From Orbicella franksi (Eukaryota), in contig OZ116710.1 in the NCBI GenBank assembly GCA_964199315.1, positions 19,282,001 to 19,346,000 on the forward strand: a DNA stretch of 64,000 nucleotides. Direction: 5' to 3'. This document shows, piece after piece, positions 1,772-55,849 of the stretch. The translations under genes and the position numbers were made by a program. The notes under the pieces were generated by a model. It saw only the letters and a program-made list of their open reading frames with translations. It did not search any database and had not been told where the DNA came from. The first letter of the stretch is position 1. Each line of letters begins with the position of its first letter.

Positions 1772-2293
1772 ATGGCGCAAAAGGTAAAACGTATGCATCA
1801 TTTCAGCCGGCTAGATACCATAATGGAGGCAACACAGAGAGAAGAGAGCGACAGTGGTGATTGTTTTCATTTAGAGTTGTCGCCAAAGTCTTTAAATGGG
1901 CGGGATTCTGTTGATGTTAAAGACATACAGGATTTGGAAACTTCAAGACGAACTGGAATTGTTTTATCCTCCACGCGAATCTGCAGATCTGGACAAAGGA
2001 GACACGAGCGTGCCACTACACCGCGCAATGTTCCATCAGCTGAATGTCTTTTTAGATTTAAACAAGATCACATTTCTGAAACGACCCAAAAGGACAACAA
2101 AAACGCTCGCGACCTCACACAGGTACAAATGCTCTTTCCAGAATTCTTCTCTAGTGGAGCGAGTAGTTCTTTTATTCATCAACGGAACTGGCATGAAGCT
2201 AATCATCAAAATAACACGACATTATTAAATGAAAAGGTCAAAGAAGATCCATTCATTCGGCCTTGGTTGAACTTGTTTGGACCCTGTTCCTAA
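1772..2293 (+). CDS. Family member A1, 173 aa (RLDTIME ... MLFPEFF ... DPFIRPWLNLFG)
   Basis: ATG in aaaATGG context; uninterrupted ORF; all three family motifs present in order. Confidence 0.85.
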   Translation: MAQKVKRMHHFSRLDTIMEATQREESDSGDCFHLELSPKSLNGRDSVDVKDIQDLETSRRTGIVLSSTRICRSGQRRHERATTPRNVPSAECLFRFKQDHISETTQKDNKNARDLTQVQMLFPEFFSSGASSSFIHQRNWHEANHQNNTTLLNEKVKEDPFIRPWLNLFGPCS

Positions 2294-3715
2294 ACTTGAA
2301 CTTCTTTGCTGTTTGAGCACTATGAAACTTGTCAATTGTCTAATTAGGACTCAGTATAGGTATATCTCTCAGTAGTAAAGATGGCATAAACATTTTTGGA
2401 AACTAATTAATCATTGTGGTGTAATTTTTTAAACATTGAACACAACGAATAGGTAACCGTGAGCCAGAGTCTGCGAAAGAGATTTATCACTATTCCATGA
2501 AAGATGTGTTCTGATTCCAACCGTCCACCACGAACTATGTTTTATATACTACGTAAATGTACTTGCCGTGCTTTACTTGACAAAGGAACAGGGACTAAGG
2601 GTCGACATCCGTGTTCTCGAGGTCATGATTGTTACATATTTACTACTAATAAGTAATTTCACGTTTCTGTTACACATAGAAGTTAGTTTATACTCAGTCG
2701 ATACATGTCACGAGTAGACTTGTAACAAGGGAGTGAAAAAGATAGGCTGCTGTTGTTATGAACGCGTACTGGTTGACACGATAGTCTGATAGTTTATATC
2801 AGTAGATAATTAACTTGATATCGAGAATCAAAGGACACTGTAAATAATGAGTCTCTCGTTACCAAGATATTAACAGCACTGTAAATAAATGGAATATAAA
2901 TTTCGATACAATTAGCTTTGGAACGCAGACAAACGTTCGTTTGTTGTTTCACGTCGTCGGCGGTTTCTTTCCGTCGCTGAAAAATTCAAAGGTATCATAA
3001 ACTACCTACGCATTCCACCTTAAAAGGTACCTTGTAGTACCAAAATACGTCATCACAAAATTGCTGCTAATCCAAATTCCAACCAAGCATAATTGTAAAT
3101 TCGTTGTTTTAAAAATCCCTAATTGTAAACGGTTCTTTTTTCTTTTAAACCTCCTATTAATAAGAGCCTCCCTTCCTCTGAAAAGCCAATGATGGATAAT
3201 ACAAGAAAACGTGAGTTAATAGCTATACATATGGTTCACCGCAGCTTAATGTGGTCTACCCAAATTGTGGTTAATCCACGTTACCCGGGCACACCCCTAT
3301 ATGGTATGGTTTTTCAGACGTGTTAGTCTAAAATAGGATATCAGTTCAGCTCAAATCAGTTATGACTTTTATGCCGTTAAAATATTCGGCCCTGAAACAT
3401 AACCAGTTGACATTCATTCCAGTTTTGACATGAGCAAAACGAGAGTATAAGATCCATTTTACGCGCTGCCCTCCTCGTTATAGAGTGTTTATTGCTGGCA
3501 AGAAGAAGCACGCTCCAAGGCCTAATTTGAATGCCAATTAATTAGTTTATTAAAAAATGATTCTCAACAAGGATTTTAAGTATTATATTCAGCTTACTAT
3601 GCATTTTAGTTGTCTAGATGCACCAGATTAACAACAACCGTATTAATTATTCCTTCTAGGACTGTCAGAAATGGTTTGAGACATGACTGAATGACTGTTT
3701 TTGTTGAAAAAAGCT

Positions 3716-4213
3716 TCAATTTAAAAATGCAAAGGGCTTATAACATAAGTTCAACCAAGCTCGAACAAGAGGAACTTCGTTTTCCTTCCATGTTCGATTG
3801 CTGATCATTATAGTAGTTTCCTAGTCGACAGAGATCAATGCTCTTTTTCTGGGGAAAAAATTCGAGAAAAAGCATTTCAACTTCAGCTATCGCGCAGAGC
3901 TTTCGAGCGTCCTGTGTTATTTTGATAACAGCTTCGTCGGTCGTTTTCACTTTTTCGTTTCTGAATATCAGTGAAAATTTAGCTAACGTGTTGCGAGAGG
4001 TCAGTCAACTTTTTTGAATTCTTTCTGTTTAATCCTGTTGTGTATTCGAGTGGAGGGTAAAGTAATTTTATCTCTCCTTAGATTGTTATTTCCGCATTTC
4101 CAGAATCCTGCGCTGAAAATCAAAGCACTCGGCATTGTTTCTCTTTTCCACTCTTTCATCTCCATTATGGCTTCAAGGCGGCTGAAACGCAAACCTTTTG
4201 CTCTATTTGCCAT
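3716..4213 (-). pseudogene. Family member A2-psi, two compensating frameshifts
   Basis: The N-terminus RLEAIME and the C-terminal EVPLVRAWLNL share one frame (4213 to 3757 = 152 codons). The middle (TSRN...VEMLFLEFF) lies in a shifted frame. The main frame has stops at 4001-4003, 3983-3985 and 3821-3823. Confidence 0.75.
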
Positions 4214-4589
4214 TTAGCTTAGTCAACCGCTGTAAACACAAGTTCTTTTACTGAAAATCGGTAAGATTCTAATTCTTCCAAGACTGTCAATGCTGCTATA
4301 TCTCAGCCTAGCGTTCCTGTTTTTTTCTTCAAAAAATGATATACAACCCATTTTATGTTTGAAATAAATGTCACTTCCAATAGTAAAAATATAGTGGCTG
4401 ATTACACGAGGCGTCGCAGATGTTATTGGAATGAAGTCATCCAGTTGTTATGGTAGGGTTGAAGAACAGCTAAACAAGCTCATCAATATTTACTCTGCGG
4501 TAAACCGCGACCACTTTGCAGTTACGCACATGATCTGAAATTAAAAAATATCCAAAAAAAAAATACGCGCACTGATTGGGTAAAAACCG

Positions 4590-10292: not shown

Positions 10293-10670
10293 CTAATCAC
10301 TTGAGCCACCTCCATACAAGTTCAACCATGACTGAATAAGTGGATCGTTGGGTGTTTGCTCAAGCTTGCCATTTCTATAAGTCTTGACCTTGTGGCTTTC
10401 CACAAAAACCGTGTTACTGCAACTTGTAAAAAACTCTGGAAAAAGTCGCTCCACTTGATTCTGCAGTTGCCCGTTGGCTGTATGAAGCTCATATCGATGG
10501 GTCTCGCGTGACGCGTGAAATGTAAACTGGCTCACTTTGCCTGTTAGGTGTGCCATATCACCTTCACATGTTTCGCCGCTTGTGCTCGCTTTTAAGGTCT
10601 TACTCGTGCTTTGTAAAATGGTCTTCATTCTGCTTATACCTAAGGTTTCAAATGAAAAATTATCTGCCAT
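10293..10670 (-). CDS. Family member A3, 125 aa (SRMKTILQ ... RLFPEFF ... DPLIQSWLNLYG)
   Basis: The track start at 10676 is TTG; the first ATG is at 10670. Central and C-terminal motifs are intact, with TATAAATA about 90 bp upstream. Confidence 0.85.
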   Translation of the reverse strand: MADNFSFETLGISRMKTILQSTSKTLKASTSGETCEGDMAHLTGKVSQFTFHASRETHRYELHTANGQLQNQVERLFPEFFTSCSNTVFVESHKVKTYRNGKLEQTPNDPLIQSWLNLYGGGSSD

Positions 10671-10759
10671 CGTCAAAATCGATTTTAGAACTATATTACG
10701 GTTCTCAATGGGTACAGCGAGCTTCTTACTTTACGAGCTCAAGTTGCAGTGAGAAGAAA

Positions 10760-10767
10760 TATTTATA
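10760..10767 (-). promoter_or_regulatory. TATA box candidate for A3
   Basis: TATAAATA on the minus strand, about 90 bp upstream of the ATG. Confidence 0.5.
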
Positions 10768-18849: not shown

Positions 18850-19659
18850 CTGTAAACACACAAGACGATCCCATTCACGACGGACTCCGCAAAATAACAG
18901 GCACATTTTGAGCTTTCATTATACAGTCATTGAGAACAGACTCATCTCAATAAAAACTCTGTTAAGAAAATAACTCCTCCTTATTGGTCATTTGTGGGTG
19001 CATGTGCTGGTCAAAGGGAAGATTTAAAGTTTTACTATCGATTTATTAAACATTGTTAAAAACAAGTCCTATAGCTTTAAAACTTTACTAAGCTCTATTT
19101 TCTCTTTTGTGAGTTACATTTCTTCTTTTTTTAGGAGCTCGGAATTGAGTCGAGATTTTTTTAGCTAAAAATCTCCATTAAACGTTACAGAGAAAGTAGC
19201 CAACCATACATGACACACGATTTTTTGGGGTCGAAAGAAATCCTTGTCGATGTTATTGAGTTTTAATCTTTTCTTATTTTTATATTTGATTTGATTCTGA
19301 GACCGTGCCAAGTTGTCTGGATCAAAATAAAGCGACACAGCGAAACAGTTTATTTATTTTCACGGTAAAGCTGCCTTTCAGAACGGGCGTAATGTATAAT
19401 GTATCCTCCTGCGTGGGTTCAAACTCGTGTGGACCTAACGCGTGAGGTGAAAATCACGTTTTAGGGCGACTGTGCTTGGTTACACAGTTCAGTCATGTTA
19501 TTGTAAAATAGACCAATAAACAGATGATGGCAGAATCGCTAGGTTGAGAAAAAAATGTAAAAACGTGAGTTATTGTGATTAAGAATCGCTGCCTACCTCA
19601 GTAGTTTGCATGTTTTCTTCAAATGGTTCATTCCCGATGCAGCATTTGGTTCACTAATC

Positions 19660-20100
19660 ATGCAAACTCCATCCAACAAATTACTTCACCTCGATCCTGA
19701 AACAGCTTGCGAGAAGACGTTATGTGTTTTCGAAGGAAGAGGATTGCTGCCTTTAAACCAAGATCTACAACCTGCCAATGATGGATTTTCTCGAAAGTTA
19801 CAAATTAACGAAACCACAATTTCAAGGAAATCCTCTCTGCTAAAAGAATTGCGGCCTTCGGCTGGAAAATTAAAATCAAGCAGTTCAGAAACACGAAAGG
19901 TTTCTTTTCGTGATGAACCTTTATATGAAACTGTAATTCCATCGTGTGATCACTCAAGAGCCCAGCTTCTCTTCCCGGACTTTTTTCCACGCGGGAAGGT
20001 GTTTTGCCATCACCAGGACTGTCTGATACCGCTTAACGTCCGAGCTGATCCAGTTCTTGTTTCTTGGTTACATCTCTTTGGACTGCAAATGACAAAATAA
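19660..20100 (+). CDS. Family member A4, 146 aa (RKVSF ... LLFPDFF ... DPVLVSWLHLFG)
   Basis: The track start is TTG; the first ATG is at 19660. Central and C-terminal motifs are intact. LxxIxE is absent and an RVxF-type motif is present. Confidence 0.85.
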   Translation: MQTPSNKLLHLDPETACEKTLCVFEGRGLLPLNQDLQPANDGFSRKLQINETTISRKSSLLKELRPSAGKLKSSSSETRKVSFRDEPLYETVIPSCDHSRAQLLFPDFFPRGKVFCHHQDCLIPLNVRADPVLVSWLHLFGLQMTK

Positions 20101-22718: not shown

Positions 22719-23261
22719 TTATCCATAAACCTGCGACCCAAACAAATCGAGCCACGACTGGACAAGCGGATCTTCGTAGTCTTTCTCACTGTACTTTTTA
22801 GACTCCTTGTGGCTAGTCTCTCTCTTATTACTACTGTTCTGCATTTCACCGTCCGTAAAAAACTCGGGGAAAAAGAGCTCAACCTCAGTAATGTCACGGC
22901 CTGTTTTGAGCGGAGATCTCATCAATGATTCACTTGAGCTACTAACAACTCCCGCAGGTGTTTCTGATACGCTTGCCATTTCCCGCCAATATGACGATGT
23001 GGCCGACAGTGTTTGTGGCGTTGCGTGGGAGCAAGATATTCTTCTTTTGAGGGGGCTGTATACAGCGGTTGAGTCACTTGAAGGTCTTCGGCCTGACTGC
23101 CCCGTGAAGGTTGTTGCATTATAGAAATCGTTAGAAATTTCTTCTTTCACGAGAGTTGAGTCTACCTCTAGATTACCATTTTCGTCTTGGTTTTCAGCTA
23201 TTTCTATAATTGTTTTGAGCCGTCTCGAGCGACCGTCGACTTTCTTCAGCATTTGTTTCAT
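22719..23261 (-). CDS. Family member A5, 180 aa (RRLKTIIE ... LFFPEFF ... DPLVQSWLDLFG)
   Basis: The track start is GTG; the first ATG is at 23261. All three motifs are present. Confidence 0.88.
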   Translation of the reverse strand: MKQMLKKVDGRSRRLKTIIEIAENQDENGNLEVDSTLVKEEISNDFYNATTFTGQSGRRPSSDSTAVYSPLKRRISCSHATPQTLSATSSYWREMASVSETPAGVVSSSSESLMRSPLKTGRDITEVELFFPEFFTDGEMQNSSNKRETSHKESKKYSEKDYEDPLVQSWLDLFGSQVYG

Positions 23262-28963: not shown

Positions 28964-29467
28964 ATGTGTCGATTTACTGGTTCAAAGCACAGAGACTATT
29001 CCCCGAGTCGTTCAACAACGATGTCTTACTGGCGTCGATTGCCCACAATTTATGAGGCTACTGATGTTGAAATGGCTGAAGAGACTGCAGCAGGCGAAAA
29101 GAGCGAACAGCAACATGTCATTGAAACAGAACAGCTGGGGGAGTACGGAATCATGTTGCCCCTTACCAAAAAGAACAAACGATCTAAACCAAGAAGGCAA
29201 AAAAATGCGAGATGCATTGTTCCTTCGTTTATTAAACCCGACTTTACAGAAGCAGATGCATCGCGGTCATTCCAGCAAATTCAAGATGAGTGGAGACACT
29301 TGTTAAGTACGCCATATTCTGACTTTTTCCCACAGGACATGAAATCGTCATTTATAGACAACAGCTTTACACTTTCAAGTAAGAAAACGCTCGGGAAAAT
29401 ACCAAACAAAGATGCTCAAGCTTGCAAGTTTAGCGAAATCGCTGCCTGGCTAGAGTTTTTTGGATGA
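28964..29467 (+). CDS. Family member A6, 167 aa (MCRF ... RRLPTIYE ... YSDFFP ... IAAWLEFFG*)
   Basis: The track start is TTG; the first ATG is at 28964. Motifs are present, with the central motif in variant form. Confidence 0.85.
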   Translation: MCRFTGSKHRDYSPSRSTTMSYWRRLPTIYEATDVEMAEETAAGEKSEQQHVIETEQLGEYGIMLPLTKKNKRSKPRRQKNARCIVPSFIKPDFTEADASRSFQQIQDEWRHLLSTPYSDFFPQDMKSSFIDNSFTLSSKKTLGKIPNKDAQACKFSEIAAWLEFFG

Positions 29468-31617: not shown

Positions 31618-31620
<3 letters not shown>

Positions 31621-31688: not shown

Positions 31689-31692
<4 letters not shown>

Positions 31693-32188: not shown

Positions 32189-32674
32189 ATGTGTAGGTTT
32201 TGCAGACACCTTGGAAAAATGCGTGCTACTTATCAAGGCAGAATTCAGACTAGGCGGAGAATCGCTTGCCTTCCTACTATTTTTGAAGCGGTAAACGAAG
32301 AGATAGGTACACTGAACAATACTGATGATTCGAGGTTACCGTTGCACCAGCGTTGTGAATATAAAAGGGAAGCAAAGGAGAAGAATGATCGTGTGGGAAA
32401 GGTTCTGTGCAAGGCTACAAGCCGAACCATGGTATTAAGGATGGACATTGGAGCGACTACGAGAACGATTACTCAATGCAACACGCACATGCGGACAGTC
32501 TACCCGGATTTTTTTCCCGAAACGACATTCTGTAGCAGCAGTATTTCAATGCAAAGTACAGGAGTTTTTAACCAAAACGCTTGCTTGGGAATAAAGCTTC
32601 TCAAAATCGGTGGAAAACGAGAATGTTTTGAAAAACAAAGAGGAATTGCCGCCTGGCTTAAGTTTTTTGGCTAA
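32189..32674 (+). CDS. Family member A7, 161 aa (MCRF ... LPTIFE ... VYPDFFP ... IAAWLKFFG*)
   Basis: ATG start, intact ORF, all three motifs present. Confidence 0.88.
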   Translation: MCRFCRHLGKMRATYQGRIQTRRRIACLPTIFEAVNEEIGTLNNTDDSRLPLHQRCEYKREAKEKNDRVGKVLCKATSRTMVLRMDIGATTRTITQCNTHMRTVYPDFFPETTFCSSSISMQSTGVFNQNACLGIKLLKIGGKRECFEKQRGIAAWLKFFG

Positions 32675-35567: not shown

Positions 35568-35900
35568 ATGGAAAAATCTTCTTCTAAGAAAGTCTTCCGT
35601 GCCCATGTGGTGTCATCTAACATGTCTCGTGAAAAACGTAGACTAGCGGCAAAAGAGCCCACGCGAAAGAGCCGAACGGAGATGTTCTGGTGCAAAGGTT
35701 CGAAAATACTTCCAGATTTTTTCCCGCCTGACAAGCTAAAGAGGAAAACATTAAATCATCAAACGATCCTTTCAGTTGTCAAAAGGATTAGCATAGTGAA
35801 ACAGTACTCCTGGGAAAATGAAGAAAGCGGAGAGTCTGAAGCGCAAACGATCGCTAAATCGTGGATGATGTACTTTGGCTTTGGCGCTTGTGAAACGTGA
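35568..35900 (+). CDS. Family member B1, 110 aa (KRRLA ... ILPDFFP ... YSWENEE ... SWMMYFG)
   Basis: ATG start, intact ORF, clearly paralogous to B2-B7. Confidence 0.85.
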   Translation: MEKSSSKKVFRAHVVSSNMSREKRRLAAKEPTRKSRTEMFWCKGSKILPDFFPPDKLKRKTLNHQTILSVVKRISIVKQYSWENEESGESEAQTIAKSWMMYFGFGACET

Positions 35901-36689
35901 TTTTCTCATTTAAAACATTGTGTTGTACGAGACGTCTTCCATAAATACAATTCTATCTAATTATTTTTTAAAAAAAGGACGAATCTTTTTCGTTGTCTTA
36001 ATGGAACCATAATTGCAATTATATATCACGTCTACAACATTCTTATTGTTGTGAAAATGCTGGTAATTCAAGCTTGTCTTGAATAATGAAAGACTAAAAC
36101 TTTCTAAAACAATGATTTGGAAGTATTGATTTATTCCATATCCATTTGCCCGCAGTTATGCAAATGACTATAAAATAATTTTATTTTGATTTACCGTTTA
36201 GAAAGATTAAACAAAACACTGTCCATTGTACGTTTACTCTTAACACTACACTTGAGGGTAAAGTCAAAAACAAAACTTGCTACGACATAACACAAACTCT
36301 TTAAAGGCGTTTACCAGCAAACTTTCAAACCTGTCACTATTGGTTTATTGCCTCTCTTTCACACTCCAACAGGAGGAAACGGTCAATGGTTGTGGTAATC
36401 TGACGGTTCAATCCGTTTGAGCTGAAAACCTTGCTTAGAGACAACAGTGTCGCTAATTTGTTAACATATACATTATGATTCGACCCATCATCATCATTAT
36501 CGAATTAAGTATTACAAAACTACGTTTTTAGAATTAAAATAAATTGAAATATAATTGAAATTAAAACATAATTCGTATTTCATTTTATTTCAATATTTCA
36601 TAACTTTAAGCTTCGTAACAACTTGTTAAAAACACACAGTTCGGATGTAGACGTGCTCTTCTGGTCGTGTAAGTTAAAATCATGATTTG

Positions 36690-36910
36690 CATGCATACCA
36701 GTTTAACAATGTCCTTGGTCAGGGCGCAAACCCTCAGCATATTTATCAGGTTGTCGTAAAAATATGACGGTGTTCATTTATACTCCTGGTCGAGTGAGGC
36801 ATTGTTCAGTGAATCATGCACAGAAACACAAATACGAAAGATCAGTCCTGATTTCGATCTCGTACCTCTAGATCTAAGGTTCGAAGTCCGGCATACTACT
36901 AGGCCATACC
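36690..36910 (-). mobile_element. Degenerate tRNA-derived SINE with CORE-like body
   Basis: The minus strand starts with tRNA-like tggcctagtagtatgccggacttcgaac...gagatcgaaatc. The body contains catttatactcctggtcgagtgaggca on +, which resembles CORE-type SINE domains as I recall them. Confidence 0.45.
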
Positions 36911-37525
36911 TGTAATGGGCACAATTTATCTATTAGCAAGAAAGGCCTGAAATACATGACTCGTATTGATCGTCGCTTGTTAGATTGTAAATAGCAACCT
37001 CACGCTTTAAGAGAAAAAAAAAACGAATCATCAATTCATGTATTTGTTGGGACTCTTTGCTCTAAATTTCTTTTGACAATATGTGATATCAGTAACATAG
37101 CAATGTTATGCGTGCCCACTTGTGAATTTCGTGTGAAGGTGGGTGCAATCTGTAAGAATTTATTATATCAACAACGGATAATGACGAGATCAAACCGGGA
37201 GCATCAAACAATCGTTATCCTGCCAGTTCACACATCTTCTCGCTTTTCGCCAATGATAATGATTTGACCATGCTCTTTTCTAATGCATGCAGCACTAACG
37301 ACGAGGAGACAAACAAACAGACAGACGTACCCGTTAACTGTTTTGCGTCTTGTGTCTGTTCTTAAGGACGTGTGCTGGGTGTATACGTCACTGGTTTGCT
37401 GTCAATTTCTGGGTATGATGCTGATTCTATTTATAGTTTTGAATCACCTCAAGTAAACAGCGCCGGGTAGTAGAAATATCAGACGGTAACCGATTGTCAG
37501 CAACCAAACTTGGCATGCGAAAAGG

Positions 37526-37888
37526 ATGATAATCACCAGAAAATACGTTTTAAAAGACAGCCTGGAAATTCCTTCGACACAGAAAGTCTTTCAAGGATAT
37601 ATGATGCCATGTAACAGTTCTCGTAAAAAACGCAGATTGAGCAAGTCTGAACGGACACGGCAGCGCCAAGAGATGTTATGTCGAAAAGGTTCGAGAATGC
37701 TACCAGATTTTTTCCCGCTTGATGAAGAAAAGAAAGAAACCTTGAATCATCAAATCATTCTTTTAACTAAACAGATTAGCACAGTGAAGCGGTACTCCTG
37801 GGAAAATGAGGAAAGCGGAGAGTCTGAAGCGAAAACGATCGCTGAATCGTGGATGAGGTACTTTGGCCTCGAGACCTGTGATTCTTGA
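37526..37888 (+). CDS. Family member B2, 120 aa
   Basis: Intact ORF. The ancestral ATG reads CTG (37562-37564) and a new in-frame ATG lies 12 codons upstream. Confidence 0.75.
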   Translation: MIITRKYVLKDSLEIPSTQKVFQGYMMPCNSSRKKRRLSKSERTRQRQEMLCRKGSRMLPDFFPLDEEKKETLNHQIILLTKQISTVKRYSWENEESGESEAKTIAESWMRYFGLETCDS

Positions 37889-39433
37889 TGTTCTTTTAAG
37901 GACTGTGTTTGTTACCATGCCTGAAAGAAATTCGTTTGACAAAGAATGCGCATTGTCAGTTTTACGCAATATCAAAGCAGTTCATGTTAATCTCTAAGAC
38001 GAATTATAATGAGCGTGGTTTCATCTTGAGATTAGTTGAAAATGTTGCATAATAGACTCTATCAATTATTTTACCTTGCATGCCCGTGCTACTATTTGCA
38101 AACGTATCTGCTAATTGGATTCTTGTTTTTAGTTCCGTTTTTTCCCAAAACACGACTAATTGTAAACAATTTTGTTTCTTGGGTGAAACTAAACAGATTT
38201 TGACATCTTTCAATGTCACAGAAAACCTCACACACGTAGCTAAAAATAATTGTTTTGAAGCAACATCAGAACATTTATCTAATTTCGCCCTATAGGATAG
38301 CGCTGCAAGTATATTCATTAAGAAAGTAAACGATTCTGCTTCAGACAGTTGAGGTGTTGTAAATAATCATTAGGGAATCAGAGTTTGAGACTTGGTTTCG
38401 TATCACCGATGTAAAGCGAACATAAAAATCTCAAATAAACTGCTTGTAAGTAAATATCGAGAATCCTCAATCGGAGACAGAACCGAAGCTTCGGATTTTC
38501 TTCCTATTAACGGAGAGACCCGAAGTAAGTCATTGCGACTTCAATTTTTTTGGAACAATCTTGCAGTCAGATCAAATTACGCAAGATGGAAAAGAGAAAA
38601 TAAATTACGTAAGAAGGAACACTTCAAGACAGACAGAAGCTTCCCTTGAATCCATGTGTTTAGACAGTATGGAACTATTACCACAACATAACTCTAAAAA
38701 ACATTTTCGACAAAAAATCTCCTAAGTCGTCTAAATCTGAGCTTTTTGACAAATCATAGAATGCAGAAACCCGAATAGGCACAAAAGACCCGGGAGATGT
38801 CTTGAAAAGGTCCGAAAAGCTCTCCAGGTTTTTTTCCCTTATGACACACCAAGTAAAAGGAAGGCATTAGATCCGGCAAAGCACAGATAGCCAAGGGTCC
38901 ATAAAGCCCGAATGATGACTTAATCATGGAAGATGTACTTTTTGCGTCGGGGCCGGTGATACTTGGTGCTCTGTTATGTAGAAATAACCGCATACCATTC
39001 GTGTTGACGAATGACCGTCCAGTAGCACCTCAATGCTTTTCAGAGACTGGACAGGATACTTTCACGTTTTAAACAAAACCGTCGACTGAGGAATTTAGAA
39101 TGTATGCTTGTAACTTGGTTACATGAATCATTTAAGACGAGGAGATACAAACAGAATCACCCGCCAATTGTTTTAGTTCCTTTGTTGTCTGTTCTCAAGG
39201 ACGTGTGCTGTGTGTGTACGTCACTGGTTTGTTTTCAATTTCTGGGTATGATGCTGCTTCTATTTATAGTTTTGTATCACTTTAAGTAAACAGCGCCAAG
39301 TAGAAGAAATATCAGACAGTAACCGATTGTCAACAACCAAACTTGCCAAGCAAAAAGGAAGATAATCACCAGAAAATACGTTGTAAAAGACAGCATGGAA
39401 ATCCTTTCGACATAGAAAGTCTTTCAAGGATAT

Positions 39434-39718
39434 ATGATGCCATGTAACAGCTCTCGTAAAAAACGCAGATTGAGCAAATCTGAACGGACACGACAGCGCC
39501 AAGAGATGTTATGTCGAAAAGGTTCGAGAATGCTACCAGATTTTTTCCCACTTGATGAACAAAAGAAAGAAACCTTGAATCATCAAGCCATTCTTTCAAT
39601 TAAATCGATTAAAATAATGAAGAAATACTCTTGGGAAAATGAGGAAAGCGGAGAGTCTGAAGCGCAAACGATCACTGAATCGTGGATGATGTACTTTGGT
39701 GCCGAGGCCGGCCTGTGA
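39434..39718 (+). CDS. Family member B3, 94 aa, downstream of an in-frame 6-codon uORF (ATG 39395, TAG 39413-39415)
   Basis: The ORF from MMPC is intact. The ancestral start is followed by TAG at codon 7, so it could be a pseudogene. Confidence 0.55.
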   Translation: MMPCNSSRKKRRLSKSERTRQRQEMLCRKGSRMLPDFFPLDEQKKETLNHQAILSIKSIKIMKKYSWENEESGESEAQTITESWMMYFGAEAGL

Positions 39719-39991
39719 TTTTTTATGTTCTTTGGGGGACTGTGTGTGTTACCATGCCTAAGAAAAATTCGTTTGACAAAGAATGTGCGGTGTTTTTACT
39801 CAATATCAAAGCAGTTCATGTTAATATCTAAGACCTATTTTTAATGTAGTTTCAGCTTGAGATTAGTTGAAAAGGTTACATAATAGGGTGTATCAATTTT
39901 CTAACTAACATATCCGTGCTGCTATTTGAAAACGTATCTGCTAATTGATTTTTGTTTTTAGTTGCGTTTTTCCCCAAAACACGATAAACCT

Positions 39992-40042
39992 ATCGCTGAA
40001 TCGTGGATGATGTACTTTGGCTCCGAGGCCTATGATTCTTGA
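39992..40042 (+). pseudogene. Duplicated 3'-terminal fragment of a B gene (IAESWMMYFGSEAYDS*)
   Basis: The last 16 codons, the stop and the 3' flank are repeated about 320 bp after the B3 stop. Confidence 0.85.
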
Positions 40043-41115
40043 TGTTCTTTTAGAGATTTGTATGTTACCATGCCTGAACGAAATTCGTTTGACAGAGGAT
40101 GTACATTGTCTTTTACATAATAGGCTGTATCAATTTTCTAACTTGCATGTGCGTGCTGCTATTTGCAAACGTATCTGCTAATTGGATTCTTGTTTTTAGT
40201 TCCGTTTTTCTCCAAAACACGACTTATTGTAAACAATCTTGTTTCTTTGGCGGAACCATATAGATTTTGACATCTTTCAGTGTCACAGAAAACCTCACAC
40301 ACTCAGCTGAAAATAATTGTTGGGAAACAACAGCAAAACATTCATCTAATTTCGCCCTATAGAATTGCACTTCAGGCATGGTTATTAAAAACAAGGAAAC
40401 GATTCTTCTTCAAACAGTTGAGGTGTATGCAAATAGTCTTTAAGGCATCAGATTTTGAGACGTGATTTCCGTATCATCAATGTAAAGCGAACATGGAAGT
40501 CTCAAATACACGATTATTTACACAGATCGCTTGTAAGTAAATATCGAGAATCGTCAGAGACATAACCGAACTTGGCTTCGGATTTTCTTCCTTTTAATGG
40601 AGAGGCCCTTTTGGTGAACTTCTTTTCAAAACTAAGTCATAGCCAGTTTAAATTTTTGAGCAATCTTGCAGTCAGATTAAAAGATCAACGAAGATCCGAA
40701 AATTACGTAAGATAGAACACTTCAAGACAGACGAAAGCTTCCCTTGAATGCATGTTTTTAGACACTATGAATCTATTACCACAACATTACTCTAAAAAAA
40801 AACATTTTCGACAAAGCATCTCCCATGTCGTCTAACTGAGCTCTTTTGACAAACTTCAGAATGCACAAACCCGGAAGATGTCTTGTGAAAGGTTCAAAAA
40901 GCTTTGCAGTTTTTTTCCTTTATGACACACCCAGTAAAAGGGAGGCATTAGATCCGGCAAAGCATAGATAACGAAGTGTCCACAAAGCCCGAATGATGAC
41001 TTAATCGTGGAAGATGTAGTCTTGGCTTCGAGGCCGGTGATACTTGGTGCTCTGTTATGTAGAAGTAACCGCATACTATTCGTGTTGACAATTTCTGGGT
41101 ATGATGCTGCTTCTA

Positions 41116-41476
41116 AGCAATTATTGGATGAGGTTTTTGTGATACCCAGAATAATCAAGGTCGAGGAAGGGGTTATCAGCCGAAGCCGAAGGCTGAGCCT
41201 GATTATTCTTACCGAGACCTTGATTATTCTGGATATCAAAAACGGAATCTAATAATTGTTTTATTACACATTGAACGAAAAAAATGGAAGTCATGTCTTT
41301 TCTTCTTCACTGACGGCAAGCAACTCAAAGTGCGCGAACTTGACATGATTACCCGTGACCTTGAGTGTCCTTGATATGATTATTGCATAATCTACAGAGA
41401 TGACGTCACAGGCGCTGATTTCGAAAATTCACCGTACGCTTTCGGCCAATCAGAAAAGAGATAGTTCAATTTATAA
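41116..41476. mobile_element. 361-bp insertion with TA duplication upstream of B4
   Basis: Sister units read cttcTA-tttatag; here it is cttcTA-[361 bp]-TA-tttatag. There is an internal perfect 17-bp inverted repeat (41146-41162 / 41216-41232). Confidence 0.85.
41401..41450 (+). promoter_or_regulatory. Full CRE palindrome TGACGTCA (41401-41408) and CCAAT (41446-41450) inside the insertion
   Basis: Direct motif match 165-215 bp upstream of the B4 ATG. Function is untested. Confidence 0.45.
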
Positions 41477-41614
41477 TATTTATAGTTTTGTATCACTTAA
41501 AGTGAACAGCGCCGAGTTGAAGAAATATCAGACAGTACTGAATCGATTGTCAGCAACCAAACTTGCCAAGCAAAAAGGAAGATAATCACCAGAAAATACA
41601 GTTTAAAAGACAGC

Positions 41615-41941
41615 ATGGAAATCCCTTCCACACCGAAAATCTTTGAAGGATATATGATGCCATGTAACAACTCTCGTAAAAAACGCAGGTTGAGCAAATC
41701 TGAACGGACACGACAGCGCCAAGAGATGTTATGTCGAAAAGGTTCCAGAATGCTACCAGATTTTTTCCCGCTTGATGAGCAAAAGAAAGAAACCTTGAAT
41801 CAGCAAATCATTCTTTCAACCAAAGCGATTAACATAGTGAAGAAGTACTCTTGGGAAAATGAGGAAAGCGGAGAGTCTGAAGCTCAAACGATCGCTAAAT
41901 CGTGGATGATATACTTTGGCGCCGAGGCCTGTGATTCTTGA
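41615..41941 (+). CDS. Family member B4, 108 aa, intact
   Basis: ATG start MEIPSTPK, no early stop, motifs intact. Confidence 0.88.
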   Translation: MEIPSTPKIFEGYMMPCNNSRKKRRLSKSERTRQRQEMLCRKGSRMLPDFFPLDEQKKETLNQQIILSTKAINIVKKYSWENEESGESEAQTIAKSWMIYFGAEACDS

Positions 41942-42206
41942 TGTTCTTTTAGGGACTGTGTGTGTTACCATACCTGAGAAAAATTTGTTTGACAAAGAAT
42001 TTGTAATGTTTTTACTCAATATCAAAGCAGTTCATGTTAATCTCTAAGACGAATTATAATGTAGTTTCAGCTTGGGATTAGTTGAAAAGGTTACATAATA
42101 GGGTGTATCAATTTTCTAACTAACATTTTCGTGCTGCTATTTGGAAACGTATCCGCTAATTGATTCTTGTTTTTAGTTGCGTTTTTCCCCAAAACACGAT
42201 AAACGT

Positions 42207-42257
42207 ATCGCTGAATCGTGGATGATGTACTTTGGCTCCGAGGCCTATGATTCTTGA
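42207..42257 (+). pseudogene. Duplicated 3'-terminal fragment (IAESWMMYFGSEAYDS*)
   Basis: Same structure as 39992-40042, located after B4. Confidence 0.85.
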
Positions 42258-43707
42258 TGTTCTTTTAGAGATTTGTATGTTACCATGTCTGAACGAAATT
42301 CGTTTGACAGAGGATGTACATTGTCTTTTACAAAATAGGCTGTATCAATTTTCTAACTTGCATGTGCGTGCTGCTATTTGCAAACGTATCTGCTAATTGG
42401 ATTCTTGTTTTTAGTTCCGTTTTTCTCCAAAACACGACTTATTGTAAACAATCTTGTTTCTTTGGCGGAACCACACAGATTTTGATATCTTTCAGTGTCA
42501 CAGAAAACCTCACACACTTAGCTGAAAATAGTTGTTGGGAAACAACAGCAAAACATTCACCTAATTTCGCCCTATAGGATTGCACTTTAAGCATGGTTAT
42601 TAAAAACAAGGAAACGATTCTTCTTCAAACAGTTGAGGTGTATGCAAATAGTCATTTAGGCATAAGATTTTGAGACGTGATTTCCGTATCATCAATGTAA
42701 AGCGAACACGGAAGTCTCAAATACACGATTAGTTACAAAGATCGCTTGTAAGTAAATATCGAAAATCGTCAGAGACATAACCGAACTTGGCTTCGGATTT
42801 TCTTCCTTTTAATGGAGAGGCCCTTTTGGTGAACTTCTTTTCAAAACTAAGTCATAGCCAGTTTAAATTTTTGAGCAATCTTGCAGTCAGATTAAAATAT
42901 CAACGAAGATCCGAAAATTACGAAGGATAGAACACTTCAAGACAGACGAAAGCTTCCCTTGAAACCATGTTTTTAGACACTATGAAAGTATTACCACAAC
43001 AGAACTTTAAAAAAAAAAAGCATTTTCGACAAAACATCTCCCGTGTCGTCTAAAAGTGAGCTTTTTTGACAAACTACAGAATGCACAAACCCGGGAGATG
43101 TCTTGTGAAAGGTTCAAACGCTTTGCATTTTTTTTTCCTTTATGATACACCCAGTAAAAGGAAGGTATTAGATCCGGCAAAGCATAGATAACCAAGGGTC
43201 TACAAAGCCCGAATGATGATTCGGAAAGATGTGGAAGATGCAGTTTTTGCGTCGGGGCCGGTGATACTTGGTGCTCTGTTATGTAGAAATAACCGCATAC
43301 CATTCGTGTTGACGAATGACCGTCCAGTAGCACCTCAATGCTTTTCAGAGACTGGACAGGATACTTTCAAGTTTTAAAGAAAACCGTAGACTAAGGAATT
43401 TATAATGTATGCTTGTTACTTGGTAACATGAATCATTTAAGACGAGGAGATACAAACAGAACCCCCCCCCCCACCCCCAATTGTTTCAGTTCCTTTGTTG
43501 TCTGTTCTCAAGGACGTGTGCTGTGTGTGTACGTCACTGGTTTGTTTTCAATTTCTGGGTATGATGCTGCTTCTATTTATAGTTTTGTATCACTTTACGT
43601 AAACAGCGCCGAGTAGAAGAAATATCAGACAGTAACCGATTGTCAACAACCAAACTTGCCAAGCAAAAAGGAAGATAAACACCAGAAAATACAGTCTAAA
43701 AGACAGC

Positions 43708-44036
43708 ATGGAAATCCTTTCGACATAGAAAGTCTTTCAAGGATATATGATACCATGTAACAGCACTCGTACGAACCGCAGATTGAGCAAATCTGAACGG
43801 ACACGGCAGCGCCAGGGGATGTTATGTCGAAAAGGTTCCAGAATGCTACCAGATTTTTTCCCGCTTGATGAACAAAAGAAAGAAACCTTGAATCATCAAA
43901 TCATTCTTTCAACCTGAAACGGATTAAAATAGTGAAGAAATACTCTTGGGAAAATGAGGAAAGCGGAGAGTCTGAAACTCAAACGATCGCTGAATCGTAG
44001 ATGATGTACTTGGGCGTCGAGACCTGTGATTCTTGA
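43708..44036 (+). pseudogene. Family member B5-psi
   Basis: TAG at 43726-43728; a 2-bp TG insertion creating TGA at 43915-43917; the conserved Trp codon reads TAG at 43998-44000; terminal FG has become LG. Confidence 0.92.
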
Positions 44037-44301
44037 TGCTCTTTGGGGGACTGTGTGTGTTACCATGCCTGAGAAAAATTCGTTTGACAAAGAATTTGTA
44101 ATGTTTTTACTCAGTATCTAAGCAGTTTATGTTAATCTCTAGGACGAATTATAATGTAGTTTCAGCTTGAGATTAGTTGAAAAGGTTACATAATAGGGTG
44201 TATCAATTTTCTAACTAACATGTCCGTGCTGCTATTTGAAAACGTATTTGCTAATTGATTTTTGTTTTTAGTTGCGTTTTCAGCCAAAACACGATAAGCC
44301 T

Positions 44302-44352
44302 ATCGCTGAATCGTGGATGATGTACTGTGGCCTTGAAGCCTATGATTCTTGA
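44302..44352 (+). pseudogene. Duplicated 3'-terminal fragment (IAESWMMYCGLEAYDS*)
   Basis: Third copy of the internal duplication, located after B5. Confidence 0.85.
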
Positions 44353-45111
44353 TGTTCTTTTAGAGATTTGTATGTTACCATGTCTGAACGAAATTCGTTT
44401 GACAGAGGATGTACATTGTTTTTATTCAATATCAAAGCAGTTCATGTTAATCTCTAAGACGAATTACAGTGTCCTTTCATCTTGAAGATTAGTTGAAAAG
44501 TTACATAATAGACTACATCAATTTTCTGACTTGCATGCCCGTGCTGCTATTTGCAAATGTATTTGCTAATTGATTCTTGTTTCTCGTCTCGTTTTTCCCC
44601 AAAACACGACTAATTGTAAACAATTTTGTTTCTTGGGCGGATCTAAACACATTGCGACATTTTTCAGTGCCACAGAAAACCTCACACACGTAGCTGAAAG
44701 TAATTGTTTTGAAACAACATCAAAACATTCATCTAATTTCGCCCTATATGATTGCATTACATGCATGTTTATTGAAATTAAGGAAACGATTCTTCTTCAA
44801 ACAGTTGAGGTGTATGTAGATAGTCATTAAGGCATCAGATCTTGAGAAGTGTTTCCGTATCATCAATGTAAAGCGAATATGGAAGTCTCAAATAAACGAT
44901 TATTTACAAAGACCGCTTGTAAGTAAATATCGAGAATCCTCAGATAGTTTTGAATCACTTTCAGTAAACAGCGCCGAGTAGAAGAAATGTCAGACGGGAA
45001 CCGATTGTCAGCAACTGAACTTGCTAAGCAAAAAGGAAGATAACCACCAGAAAATACGTTGTAAAAGACAGCATGGAAATCCCTTCGACATAGAAAGTCT
45101 TTCAAGGATAT

Positions 45112-45399
45112 ATGATGCCATGTAACAGCTCTCGTACAAAACGCAGATTGAGCAAATCTGAATGGACACGGCAGCGCCAGGGGATGTTATGTCGAAAAGG
45201 TTCCAGAATGCTACCGGATTTTTTCCCGTTTGATGAACAAAAGAAAGAAACCTTGAATCATGAGATCATTCTTTCAACCAAAGCGATTAACATAGTGAAG
45301 AAATACTCTTGGGAAAATGAGGAAAGCAGAGAGTCTGACGCTCAAACGATCGCTGAATCGTGGATGATGTACTTTGGTCTCGAGGCCAGTGATTCTTGA
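45112..45399 (+). CDS. Family member B6, 95 aa, downstream of an in-frame uORF (ATG 45073, TAG 45091-45093)
   Basis: The ORF from MMPC is intact. The upstream region has lost about 800 bp relative to sister units, so it may be a pseudogene. Confidence 0.5.
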   Translation: MMPCNSSRTKRRLSKSEWTRQRQGMLCRKGSRMLPDFFPFDEQKKETLNHEIILSTKAINIVKKYSWENEESRESDAQTIAESWMMYFGLEASDS

Positions 45400-47659
45400 T
45401 GTTCTTTGGGGGACTGTGTGTGTTATCATGCCTGAGAAAAATTCTTTTGACAGAGAATGTGCATTGTTATATCAGAGCATGTCATGTTAATATGCAAGAC
45501 TATTTTTAATGTAGATTCAGCTTGAGATTAGTTAAAAAGGTTACATCATAGGCTATATCAATTTTCTAACTTGCATGTCCGTGCTGCTATTTGCAAACGC
45601 ATCTGCTAATTGGATTCTTCTTTTAATTTCCGTCTTTCCCCAAAACACGACCAATTGTAAACAATTTTCTTAGGCGGAACTAATTAATAAACAGATTTTG
45701 ACATCTCTCAGTGTCACACACGTCGCTGAAAATAATTAATAATGTTTTGAAGCAACATCCAAACTCTTGATCTAATTTCGTCCTTTAGGATTGTACTTCA
45801 AGCATGTTCATTAAAAACAAGGAAACGATTCTGCTTCAAACAGTTGAAGGTGTATGCAAATAATCATTAGGGAAACTGATTTTGGAGACGCGATTTCCGT
45901 ATCATTGATGTAAAGCAAACGGGGAAGTCTCAAGTAAACGATTTTTTAGAACGACCACTTTTAAGTAAAATATCGAGAATCGTCAGTCAGAGACAGAACC
46001 GAAGCTTCGGATTTTCTTCCATCCAGCGGAGAGAACCTTTTGGTGAACTTGTTTTTAAAACTAAGTCTTAGCGAGTTTATTATTTTTTTTAGCAAACTTG
46101 CATAGAGATTAAAGGTCAACTGAGATCCGGAAAATTTCGCAAGACTGAGAACACTTCAATAAAGACGACAGCTCCCACGTTTTTAGACTCTATGAAACTA
46201 TTGCCACAACGTAACTCTAAAACAACATTTTTGACAAACAAATCAAATTTTTGGCAATTTCTGCGGGGCCTCACTTCCTCATGAAATATTTATTAGAAGA
46301 TTCTAAAGAAATAGAATCAACAATCATGTGATGAAACGAGGGATTTAAAGGAAGCCAGGAAATTTGCGTTGGTTATGTTGTGAAGGCATGTATTTAGATT
46401 TTTCCCGCATTGTCGAATTTCCTGTGACTTGTTTGAAAAATTCCTGTCGCCAATATTACCAGGAGAAATATTCCTGAAATAGGCACCAAATTTACATTTT
46501 TTTTTCCATGGTTACTATTTGATTTGTTTTATATGCATTGTAACAAGCTTAGACAATCGTGTGATGATTTTGGGCAGCGGTTATGAAATGATGCGAGAGA
46601 GATTTCTCAAAATGTTTAGTCATCAACTTTCTGGGCACGGTGGTAAATTAATAAATATAGAAAGAACGTTTACCAGAATAGGGATTTTCTGCACCCGCTT
46701 TTATTATTTGCTCCACTTGACTTTCGCGAACGAGTAACCATCACTTAATATCTTACAGTTGCACCGCGATTCTCTTTCATTTTCATTTCTAAAATATTAC
46801 TCGTTTGCAGTAAAACGAGGAAAGAAAATGTTCCATTTTGACAAGGAGACATTTACAAACCCACATGTGAGGGTTGGAGTTCAATTTTGCCAGTCCTTCC
46901 AAATCATTGAAGCTGAGTTCAAAGATTTCTCTTTCGCAGTTTCGTCAATTTCAATTTTGTTCCTCTTCACCGCATAGTCCAGTTAAGTAATCCTTCTGGG
47001 TCTTTCAGGCCTCGAAGTTCAGAAGAAATACTCAATGAAGTATAACGCTTATGGCTGTGAAAATACAGTATTAATTCATTATAAATTCGATCATCTTTTT
47101 CTTAAAGCTATGAAAGCTTGTTGAATAAGTAATACATGTAGATACCGGCAGAAAATCTCAAATTTTAAGACTTTGGTAGAATGTCGTAAATTGGTTGCTA
47201 TTGATAATTACTGGCTGTTCTCGTGTAATAACTATGTACTAGACTACTTGTTACAAACAAATTGAGAAACATCGGAAGCAACAGTTGGTTATGATAATAA
47301 AATAAAAAATTAGCTATTCACGGAAATATCTAAGATGCCCAATTTAGTAAATAACGGAGCAAAATGTACTCGATGGTCTAAGTTGGTAATAGCTCACATA
47401 GCACGCTTTTGTAAATAGAAAAATCTTTTAAATTTAGTCAGATATTTAGACGGCCAGGTACAATTACAATATGTGATACAAGGATAAATTAACGTGCAGT
47501 ACAATCTTAGTTTAGTATTGAAAGACAAGTAGAATGTAGACCTAAATATTATACCAATTGTTTTAGAGTTTTGTTTACATTCATAGCTGAAAAAATATTG
47601 ACCGAGAGCATATTCCTTTCATCCAAACGTCAAGATTGATGGTTCACTGCCAAACAATG

Positions 47660-47810
47660 ACTCACCCACATGAGTGCTATTTAAGAAATAGAAAACATGT
47701 ACCGTGTTTCCATCGAGTTATAGAAACACGAGTGCAAGTTTGGGAGAACGAGAAATGCGGAGGTGAAACACGAGCCGACAGGCGAGTGTTTCCACAGCTT
47801 TTGCGAGTTC
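47660..47810. repeat. Interspersed repeat, related to 4590-4755
   Basis: gtgtttccatcgagttatagaaacacgag...gaacgagaaatg...gcgagtgtttccacagc. Confidence 0.55.
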
Positions 47811-48896
47811 TCAAATCACAGCCCATTGATCAGAATGTAAGATCAAGACCAGTTCACTGTATTTCTAAAAACTAAAAAAATGTAATATTTAATCTGGTAT
47901 CCTGTTAAAGTGACACTGAATGCTTGTCCTTGCTTATCTGTAAAAAACGTCTTTCCAGCACGAATCGAACCTATTATCTGCTTTGACGCCAATAAATGAT
48001 TTGAAGGTTGCAAACACAGCAGAACTGACGCCAAGTGTTGGTAAACGGGTTGATGGGTGGTCTCTTATTTCTCGTGTATTGAACGCCCACAGGAACTATT
48101 TGGATCAAGACGTCTAGCGCTCTTCTTGATTAAAAACAATACATTTCACACAGTAAGCTTATTGAGAGAACCTTATAAAAGCCTTAGATATACCAAAGAC
48201 AAAAAAAAGCAAACAACAGCTTTGTAGTAAACTCATCTTAAACGTTTTAATAGGCAACTTCATGCTGTGAATGTAGAACCCATTCATGATTACAAACCTC
48301 AGCAGTGTATGACAAGGTGAAGCAATTAAGTCACGGTATTGCGTTCAATATTTGAAGCCAAGAGAGATAACTGGTTCAGATGAGAAAACGATTTTCACAA
48401 AAATAACGCCGTTTTGGAAATGTTAATAATCTATAACCCTTGATAACCTATTACAGAAATGGCACTTGAATCTCCGTCGATTGAAGAGTCAGTTTAGCTG
48501 TCAAGATGGCAGCATTCGGTCAATTCTATTTTCGAACGAGCAAGGGTAAAAAAAGAAACAGCAGGAAATACGTAATGTTGTACTCATTTACGTAACTTAT
48601 GACTTCCCTCTTTCGGCCAATGAGATCGATTCACCACAGGTTTAAATACAAGCACAATCAAACTGGAAGAATTGATAACGATAGGTTTTTTGCTCCAAGT
48701 TGTACTTGACTGCGTCTGCATATTTCATCCCAAAATTTCAAGCATTTTGTGTTCATCATTATACTTGAAACTTTGCTTTGAGTAAAGGAAGTACACGAGG
48801 AGATATACTGTGCAAGTGACCGTAGCTATCAGTAGGCTAGTAAGAGGAAGCCAAGACATCACCTCATTTCAAAAGGAAGAAGAAGAACCTAAAGAT

Positions 48897-49238
48897 ATGG
48901 AAATATCTTCAACACATAACGTCTGCTATGGTCATATACTTTCATCTGACAGCTCACGTGGCAAACGTAGATTAAGCAAATCTGAGCGGACACGGAGAAG
49001 TCGAGAGATGTTTTGTAGAAAAGGTTCTAAAATACTTCCAGATTTTTTCCCACCTGACACACCAGCTGAGAGAACTCTTGATGATCAAAGTAAACTTTCT
49101 GTCAAGAGCACAAGCATGATGAAGCAGTATTCCTGGGAAAATGAAGAAAATGGACAATCTGAAGCTCAGACGATCGCTGAATCATGGATGATATACTTTG
49201 GACTTGAGGCCCGTGATAGTCTGCTGATTAGAAACTGA
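48897..49238 (+). CDS. Family member B7, 113 aa
   Basis: The track start is GTG; the first ATG at 48897 (MEISST) aligns with the B1/B4 starts. Motifs are intact. Confidence 0.87.
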   Translation: MEISSTHNVCYGHILSSDSSRGKRRLSKSERTRRSREMFCRKGSKILPDFFPPDTPAERTLDDQSKLSVKSTSMMKQYSWENEENGQSEAQTIAESWMIYFGLEARDSLLIRN

Positions 49239-51711: not shown

Positions 51712-51816
51712 GACGAATAGTATTTCTGGGAAAATGATGAAAACCAGGAGACTGAAGATCAAAAGATCGCTTGATCGTGGGTGATGGATTTACTTCGGTC
51801 TCGCGAGAAGCTCTAA
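51712..51816 (+). pseudogene. Family member B8 relic (3' end only)
   Basis: YFWENDENQETEDQKIA*SW..YFGL aligns with B7 YSWENEENGQSEAQTIAESWMIYFGL. There is TGA at 51772-51774 and a 4-nt excess before YFG. Confidence 0.8.
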
Positions 51817-54800: not shown

Positions 54801-55378
54801 GTTCGCAAATGACATTTAGACGTAAAATATGACACCCCTTGTCAAAGAAATAAAAAAAAAACTGGAGTAAACAAAGTCATCGTCATGAAGGGCAATATAA
54901 CTGTCATTTTTCCAACTGCTCAAAAACATTCGTGGCATGTTACAAGCCTTTGTTGAAAAAGAAGAAATCGACTTGCTAAGTCGAAATGCGCAATCCTTTT
55001 CGTAACATCCACGATAGCTGCGTTGGCTGGTCTCAGATTTGAAAGCGAAAGCAGAATTTTGATAATGTAAGTCCCACGCACGTCACATTATTTCGTCAAA
55101 ATACTTTGTTTTCATTACTCTAAACGCAGGTGCACATGTCGCGTGAACGTCAACCGACACTTTGTGGGATTTACGAAATTTGAAAAGGGACTTGCCGTCA
55201 CGACATACGTTAGCGGCGGATAACAATTCATCCTAAAAGTTGTCATTTTTGGACAAAAGAACCCCATGGATAAATAGCCTGCGTCTGAGTGGAATCAGGT
55301 CAGATTTGCGATAAAGCGAGACAACGAGGAACAAGTTCTAGTGCTCCAGTGAAATCGAAGACGAAAAAAAGTTACAAC

Positions 55379-55849
55379 ATGAAGCAGAATGCTCCATTTC
55401 TACCGAGATTAAAAATGACGCGACATCTGAGCACGATTGTGGAGGGAAGAGAAGATAATGATGAGTTTGGCGATGTTGGTGGACTGTTTGGCAGACCTGG
55501 TGAAAATAGACACAGGAGATTCAGTCGAAGGGTGTACTCATGTAGTGACATTACAGTAGCTGCGAACAAAAAACCCGATAATTTAATTCTTCCTCCGTTG
55601 GCAAATCCTGAGAAAAACGAGAGACAATCTTTACATGGCAATGGAAAAGGCCCACGAGGTAACCTTAAAGTGGTAGACTGTACTGCTAATATATTCCCAG
55701 ACTTTAGACCGCCTGATAGGACTCAGAGTATCATGGACTTTGACTCTAAGGTTTCAAGACTTTCCACGCGGTCAAAATCAAACGATGAACACAGTTTTTC
55801 TCAAAACAAGGAGAACATTGTTGCCTCGTGGCTTCAATTCTTTGGATGA
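55379..55849 (+). CDS. Family member A8, 156 aa (RHLSTIVE ... IFPDFR ... IVASWLQFFG*)
   Basis: The track start is GTG; the first ATG is at 55379. All three motifs are present. Confidence 0.87.
   Translation: MKQNAPFLPRLKMTRHLSTIVEGREDNDEFGDVGGLFGRPGENRHRRFSRRVYSCSDITVAANKKPDNLILPPLANPEKNERQSLHGNGKGPRGNLKVVDCTANIFPDFRPPDRTQSIMDFDSKVSRLSTRSKSNDEHSFSQNKENIVASWLQFFG

Follow-up and report, generated by a model that had tools for sequence, protein, structure and literature searches.

Docking of the phosphatase PP2A-B56 through an N-terminal L-x-x-I-x-E motif is proposed here for a family of small proteins of the scleractinian coral Orbicella franksi, whose genes lie in tandem copies within a 64-kb stretch of contig OZ116710.1 (the whole of this stretch is called the window below). 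In this family, comparison of relatives indicates that selection maintains the N-terminal pattern R-[RHK]-L-x-T-I-x-E-x-x-[ED] as a short linear motif. Docking of PP2A-B56 by this motif is judged somewhat likelier to hold than to fail, and docking, together with every step downstream of it, is what we infer from the sequence. The window has a G+C content of 32-40% and very few long open reading frames (ORFs), and the majority of the ORFs of at least 100 aa come from this one family, whose genes are small and consist each of a single ORF (A1 to A8 and subfamilies B and C; Table 1). In a window-wide alignment the family shows three short islands, which are L-x-T-I-x-E at the N-terminus of some members, [FLY]P[ED]FF in the centre and W[LM]xx[FY]G at the C-terminus; the sequence between these islands aligns poorly, with paralogues only 12-26% identical to A1. 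The central FP[ED]FF and the C-terminal W[LM]xx[FY]G are the only universal parts of the family, and about half of its members, including A3, A4, subfamilies B and C and many short representatives, lack the N-terminal motif and keep the other two.

All six LxxIxE instances quoted in a preliminary description of this DNA were recovered by a six-frame motif scan in the places given for them, and their position at the N-termini, claimed in the same description, is borne out by start codons that are backed by orthologues. The motif lies 13-28 residues from the initiator Met, with its first residue at position 14 in A1, 15 in A5, 26 in A6, 28 in A7 and 17 in A8, and three-frame translation agrees that A2 is a pseudogene, with its three motifs in different frames and stops between them. 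A wider panel of 49 rows was gathered by a loose motif regular expression and comprises 44 N-terminal motifs and 5 stray matches. When motif residues are numbered from P1, the Leu, L is found at P1 in 44 of the 49 rows, Thr at P3 in 42 and I at P4 in 43 (with L and I in 6/6 of the window copies), and the Glu at P6 of the family motif is never replaced by D. The panel also agrees with the description of the motif as mostly preceded by Arg, R being present at -2 in 28/49 and R, H or K at -1 in 34/49, with K/R common at -4 to -11 as well, and as followed by an acidic tail, E or D being present at P9 in 34/49 and common at P10-P13. The family-wide pattern therefore reads R(-2)-[RHK](-1)-L-x-T-I-x-E-[TAIV]-[TVA]-[ED], with further acidic residues after it.

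The conservation of this motif was assessed in three orthologue alignments, which were built without reference to it. In the A5 set (22 orthologues, identity as low as 36-39%), all four of L, T, I and E are invariant; the A8 set (10 relatives, identity as low as 25%) has invariant L, I and E and a T conserved at 90%; and the A1 set (13 relatives) has an I conserved at 92% beside invariant L, T and E. Column conservation across the three sets is accordingly 0.9-1.0 for L/T/I/E and 0.92-1.0 for L, I and E alone, the other columns before the central motif averaging 0.45-0.66 and the positions x2 and x5 lying at 0.4-0.8. Variation at x2 and x5, with L, I and E fixed, thus reproduces the wildcards of LxxIxE, the conserved Thr being the one addition. 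The pattern that the preliminary description had named as contrary to B56 docking, in which orthologues keep other positions and not L/I/E, is absent. In A6, RRLPTI[YH]E is conserved in two other corals. A further observation comes from the A3 lineage (the window copy and P0043, P0061, P0072 and P0074), where the initiator Met stands at position 1 of the former LxTIxE, the upstream basic stretch has been lost, and the remnant drifts between species, reading MKTILQ in the window and MKAILQ, MKTVLE, MNTTLE or MKTLFN in the others. Since the motif drifts freely where it is not kept, its invariance outside the A3 lineage is selective.

The family is small, with 67 matches among 1.84 billion representatives in a profile search, one of which (P0071, 1060 aa) is a false positive, a low-complexity tandem-repeat protein, and was left out of the family panel of 66 real representatives. 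Strict LxxIxE occurs within the first 70 residues of 32 of these 66, and LxTIxE in 30, as against 1.0 on average and at most 5 for strict LxxIxE in 2000 composition-preserving shuffles; a match of the Eukaryotic Linear Motif (ELM) type lies further along the protein in only 3/66. Because the 66 sequences are related, conservation is stronger evidence than this excess over shuffles.

The docking motif of B56 has been defined as [LMFI]xx[ILV]xE, in which L and I are the best residues at their positions and the E at P6 is irreplaceable, even by D, and acidic or phosphorylated residues at P2, P7, P8 and P9 have been shown to enhance binding (PMC10970375; PMC5586252). Affinity has also been shown to rise, through an acidic patch on B56, when a basic patch lies no more than about 15 residues N-terminal to the motif (PMC7108865). 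The coral motif has the preferred residues at P1 (L), P4 (I) and P6 (E), and places R, K or H at -1 and -2, inside the reach described for the basic patch. AlphaFold2 models made with alignments predict A5 and A1 to be largely disordered (mean predicted local distance difference test score, pLDDT, 55-56; predicted template modelling score 0.14 and 0.21), with no secondary structure at the motif, where block-mean pLDDT is 55-57 in A5 and 52-62 in A1. In these models only the FPEFF and C-terminal stretches are helical (block-mean pLDDT 64-79), so that the two motifs shared across the family are modelled as weakly helical, and the N-terminal motif is predicted to lie in the kind of accessible, disordered region asked of a B56 motif. 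The L/I/E core, the acidic tail, the upstream basic pair, the predicted disorder and the conservation in orthologues thus uphold the earlier claim that this motif has the sequence properties of PP2A-B56 LxxIxE sites. Under the rule of Wu et al. 2017 (PMC5586252), in which N counts D/E plus S/T minus K/R at P2, P7, P8 and P9 and should be at least 1 together with L1 and I4, A1 and A6 score 2 and A8 and A2-psi score 1, and 103 of the 131 family members with the motif at the N-terminal position pass the rule; acidic residues at P10-13 lie outside this count.

Several features weigh against B56 docking. A5 (LKTIIEIAE) and A7 (LPTIFEAVN) have N=0 under the same rule, and A5 carries a Lys at P2, where basic residues are disfavoured; this K is the reason for the N=0 of A5 in the source genome, most A5 orthologues having N at P2 instead. 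P7 and P8 are for the most part occupied by T/A/V/I rather than by acidic residues, the B56 motif definition does not call for the near-invariant Thr at P3, and, as LxxIxE has only three fixed positions, a motif conserved for a different partner could resemble it by chance. This leads to the best-surviving alternative, in which R-R-L-x-T-I-x-E serves another partner or modification, for example as a basophilic-kinase site on the Thr that is read by a phospho-binding domain, and its match to LxxIxE is coincidental. We consider this a real possibility, if a rather unlikely one. The P3 Thr, which B56 does not need, is as conserved as L, I and E, the R at -2 is strongly conserved, the context is kinase-like (R at T-3/T-4, Ile at T+1 and Glu at T+3), and the B56 regular expression is short, shuffled sequences matching its loose ELM form in about 7/66. 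On the other hand, the variable positions are exactly x2 and x5, the L and I are the best residues for B56 and the E is never D, and a Thr at P3 is present in several measured B56-binding peptides, namely RacGAP1 KRLSTIDE, FoxO3 MQTIQE and Emi2 LSTLRE (PMC7108865 for Emi2), as well as in the substrates CCNG2 LPTIPE and ESPL1 MRTIPE predicted by Wu et al. (PMC5586252).

Other motif classes, checked by hand against their consensus patterns, do not fit the N-terminal motif. For R-R-L-x-T-I-x-E, a cyclin RxL motif was rejected for the lack of F/L at +1/+2 of the Leu and an APC/C destruction box for the lack of R at -3, and 14-3-3 mode I/II, PP1 RVxF, the CoRNR box and the nuclear export signal were likewise rejected. 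A kinase site on the Thr and B56 docking are not mutually exclusive, and the idea, raised in the preliminary description, that an Arg-x-x-Thr context could make docking phospho-regulated fits, as a possibility, the near-invariant P3 Thr and the basic residues at T-3/T-4.

Another example of an L-S-T-I-x-E core is found in RacGAP1/Cyk4, and the comparison with it in the preliminary description was correct. The validated RacGAP1 peptide NKRLSTIDESGS (PMC8809670) and the A8 sequence TRHLSTIVEGRE share this core, a basic pair directly upstream and the Thr at P3, although there is no homology between RacGAP1 and the coral proteins. Phosphorylation of P7 by Plk1 is the switch for binding in RacGAP1 (PMC5586252), as opposed to the coral motif, which has fixed acidic residues from P9 onward and T/A/V/I at P7-8. 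The motifs of BubR1 KARD (KKLSPIIEDDRE), KIF4A, Repo-Man, AIM1 and NHS are similar to that of the coral family in that a disordered LxxIxE core follows a basic patch and precedes acidic residues (PMC7108865). However, these motifs usually have S-P at P2-P3, allowing CDK (cyclin-dependent kinase)-dependent enhancement, where the coral family has x-T, and their basic patch is described only as lying within about 15 residues N-terminal, whereas the coral basic residues abut the motif. At the level of the motif only, cyclin G2 LPTIPE resembles the LPTI[YF]E of A6 and A7, and separase MRTIPEEE resembles the MRTIVEE of P0082; both cyclin G2 and separase are predicted PP2A-B' substrates (Wu et al., 2017).

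In the mechanism that we favour, the motif would dock into the conserved groove for LxxIxE on B56, a regulatory subunit of PP2A, helped by the adjacent basic pair through contact with the B56 acidic patch and by the downstream acidic residues through the basic rim of the pocket. The motif-bearing A1, A5, A6, A7 and A8 lineages would in this way bring PP2A-B56 to their own Ser/Thr-rich linker and be its substrates, or alternatively would bring it to a binder of the C-terminal module and act as adaptors; members without the motif (A3, A4, B and C) would have neither role. In the A5 alignment, the linker holds conserved Ser/Thr-Pro stretches (HATP, TPAG) roughly 55-90 residues past the motif, and LxxIxE has been shown to promote dephosphorylation of sites 12 and 70 residues away, with a slower effect at 130 (PMC10970375). 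Because half of the family lacks the motif and keeps the other two, B56 docking would be an accessory module on a partner-binding core, and this putative arrangement fits a substrate or adaptor role better than that of a pure competitor. A bolder and, in its full form, unlikely proposal is that these are lineage-restricted coral microproteins composed of nothing but short linear motifs, in which a shared C-terminal module (FP[ED]FF with W[LM]xx[FY]G) is combined with a near-optimal B56 motif in some paralogues, and the paralogues that have lost it (A3, A4, B and C) bind the same partner without the phosphatase, ultimately giving a tunable, paralogue-encoded form of phosphatase targeting.

The preliminary description suggested that these proteins may form a battery of B56 competitors or targeting adaptors, but nothing specific was found in favour of this. 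Half of the family (A3, A4, B and C) is without the motif. Competitive inhibitors would take the LxxIxE groove from substrates, in the manner of the engineered 4xLxxIxE inhibitor or the CIP2A motif, and we regard this role as very doubtful. In its favour, a near-optimal L/I/E core recurs in many tandem paralogues, small disordered proteins would be suited to act as pseudosubstrates, engineered and natural LxxIxE-based inhibitors exist (PMC10970375), and the coral proteins, if abundant, would use the same groove as 4xLxxIxE and the LxxIxE-like peptide of CIP2A. Competition is, however, a sub-case of B56 binding that needs high abundance or affinity, and the RNA depth of A4 and A5 is low (1-3x in polyA reads); moreover, each protein has one motif, and the universal C-terminal motif pair would be unneeded by a pure competitor. 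CIP2A itself differs in that its motif is weak (V at P4) and lies within a large folded dimer, whereas the coral proteins are disordered and ~160-185 residues in length.

Raw polyA RNA-seq reads cover A4 (about 19600-20400) and A5 (about 22200-23400), with no splice joints seen in the RNA reads over either gene and, a short repeat apart, almost no reads between them. One RNA contig (22425-23297) contains the entire A5 ORF together with about 300 nt of 3' untranslated region. The gene order A6-A5-A4 is conserved in Desmophyllum (L001) and in another coral assembly (L003), and pairwise ratios of nonsynonymous to synonymous substitution (dN/dS) for A4, A5 and A6 across three species are 0.36-0.64, which indicates that these genes are under purifying but relaxed selection, as expected for disordered proteins. 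It is thus barely credible that the ORFs are not real genes or that recent duplication left the motif behind as a neutral relic, for which the want of a Pfam match, the single named database entry and the predicted disorder might speak, as this is already contradicted by a motif intact in orthologues down to 36% (A5) and 25% (A8) identity and shared by paralogues only 13-26% identical to A1, by dN/dS below 1, by synteny in other corals and by the polyA RNA cover.

The motif class is well known, and its occurrence in the present family is new. The family is undescribed: a Pfam scan of nine members gave nothing above noise, literature searches, both for LxxIxE in cnidarians and for any description of such a coral family, gave no match, and the one relative with a database name is a "hypothetical protein" from Desmophyllum pertusum, also a scleractinian coral. 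Coral metagenome is the label of many RNA runs in which the sequence occurs. An ESM Atlas feature search with A5 returned unrelated hypothetical proteins with a top score of 0.71, and a profile search of the PDB gave chance matches only (E 0.8 or higher). Among these was a stretch of the Aurora-A kinase domain (VEFTFPDFVTEG) similar to the FPEFF region, rejected as chance-level; the region ISEVELFFPEFFTDGE (profile positions 104-132 of the A3 alignment) resembles Aurora-A RISRVEFTFPDFVTEG (3d14_A 212-239) at E=0.8, probably by chance. For the central and C-terminal motifs, FFAT (EFFDAxE), AP-2 FxDxF/DPF, the PIP box, the Nanos NOT1-interacting motif and acidic activation-domain helices were tried, and none fits across paralogues.

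If the motif does bind B56, the coral family would represent substrates or adaptors of PP2A-B56 that are specific to one lineage, and its paralogues with and without the docking site would provide a natural comparison for what recruitment of PP2A-B56 adds. It would also follow that three short motifs can be all that unites a family whose disordered sequence otherwise drifts freely. Domain databases miss such genes, and the present family has a database name in one coral only. At present the finding, which predicts a well-known class of motif from sequence, is of moderate value. The B56 groove has been reported as highly conserved, which makes the prediction cheap to test with peptides. Hertz et al. 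are said to have found in 2016 that the pocket is conserved across eukaryotes. A review calls the pocket "well-conserved" (PMC10970375).

Table 1. Family genes and motifs in the window, with strand and the basis for each entry.
Feature	Position	Strand	Basis
A1 gene, 173 aa, intact ORF	1772..2293	+	ORF list; orthologue alignment; AlphaFold2, N-terminal ~110 residues predicted disordered
A1 motif LDTIME with acidic tail ATQREESD	1811..1852 (LDTIME 1811-1828)	+	six-frame scan; Wu rule N=2
A2-psi pseudogene	3650..4260	-	frameshifts and stops between three motifs (three-frame translation)
A2-psi motif LEAIME, Ala at P3	4160..4177	-	six-frame scan; three-frame translation; Wu rule N=1
A3 gene, 127 aa, no working motif	10293..10676	-	ORF list; alignment
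A3 decayed remnant MKTILQ (P1 L->M, P6 E->Q)	10611..10628	-	A3 alignment; N-termini of A3-like proteins
A4 gene, 146 aa, no motif	19660..20100	+	alignment; covered by polyA RNA reads
A5 gene, 180 aa from ATG at 23261	22719..23261	-	orthologues begin MKQMLKK; unspliced expression; dN/dS 0.42-0.57
A5 motif LKTIIE, RSRR before, IAENQDEN after	23202..23219	-	six-frame scan; Wu rule N=0
A6 gene, 167 aa	28964..29467	+	ORF list; syntenic orthologues in L001 and L003
A6 motif LPTIYE, WRR before, ATDVEMAEE after	29039..29056	+	six-frame scan; Wu rule N=2
A7 gene, 161 aa	32189..32674	+	ORF list; near-identical representative P0044
A7 motif LPTIFE, then AVNEE	32270..32287	+	six-frame scan; Wu rule N=0
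Subfamily B tandem copies, ~108-142 aa, LPDFFP and SWMxYFG, no LxxIxE	35568..49238	+	ORF list; six-frame scan
A8 gene, 156 aa from orthologue-supported ATG	55379..55849	+	ORF list; orthologue alignment
A8 motif LSTIVE, TRH before, GREDNDE after	55427..55444	+	six-frame scan; Wu rule N=1
Two subfamily C copies, FPEF[FH] and W[VY]KxE[YF]GM, no LxxIxE	60150..62679 (60150-60800; 62296-62679)	-	ORF list; six-frame scan

Among the members without the motif, A4 has an aligned stretch, LHLDPE (19684-19701), that looks like a remnant of it, with the I of P4 replaced by D. A4 also contains RKVSF, which is like the PP1 RVxF motif; the two syntenic A4 orthologues read KVRGGSC and ETFRGET at this place (L001 13327-13782; L003 14909-15322), and since RKVSF is absent from both, a conserved PP1 docking site is unlikely. 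Subfamily B (35568-51800, plus strand) is a recent tandem array whose copies are 82-85% identical to the copy at 37526, with additional orphan C-terminal fragments at about 39986, 42201, 44296 and 51721. Its N-terminus, ST-PK-IFEG, bears a faint likeness to the LSTIVEG of A8 with a two-residue insertion, and may be a decayed remnant. No link of subfamily C to A or B was found by tblastn at E 0.01.

A6 and A7 have a Met-Cys-Arg-Phe start in common (28964-28975 and 32189-32200), and MCRF[TI]G is present at the N-terminus of the A6 orthologues of two other corals (L001 and L003), so that the very N-terminus is likewise conserved. In a distant species, the relative P0026 (about 41-42% identical to A5) has as its neighbour a 1296-aa ORF (L002 121-4011) with a faint Endonuclease_7 match, which adjoins an HNH_3 gene; there is no family paralogue within 10 kb of P0026, unlike in the coral clusters. 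Between A4 and A5, a segment of ~35 nt at 21139-21177 (ggacgacagtcggaaatacgtctgcgttcgcaggc...) has an RNA contig depth of about 1440 and 400, compared with 5-20 nearby, and shows many different loose ends on both sides; it is probably a short repeat common to many transcripts. RNA depth is likewise high (453 and 189) in the bin 25200-25399.

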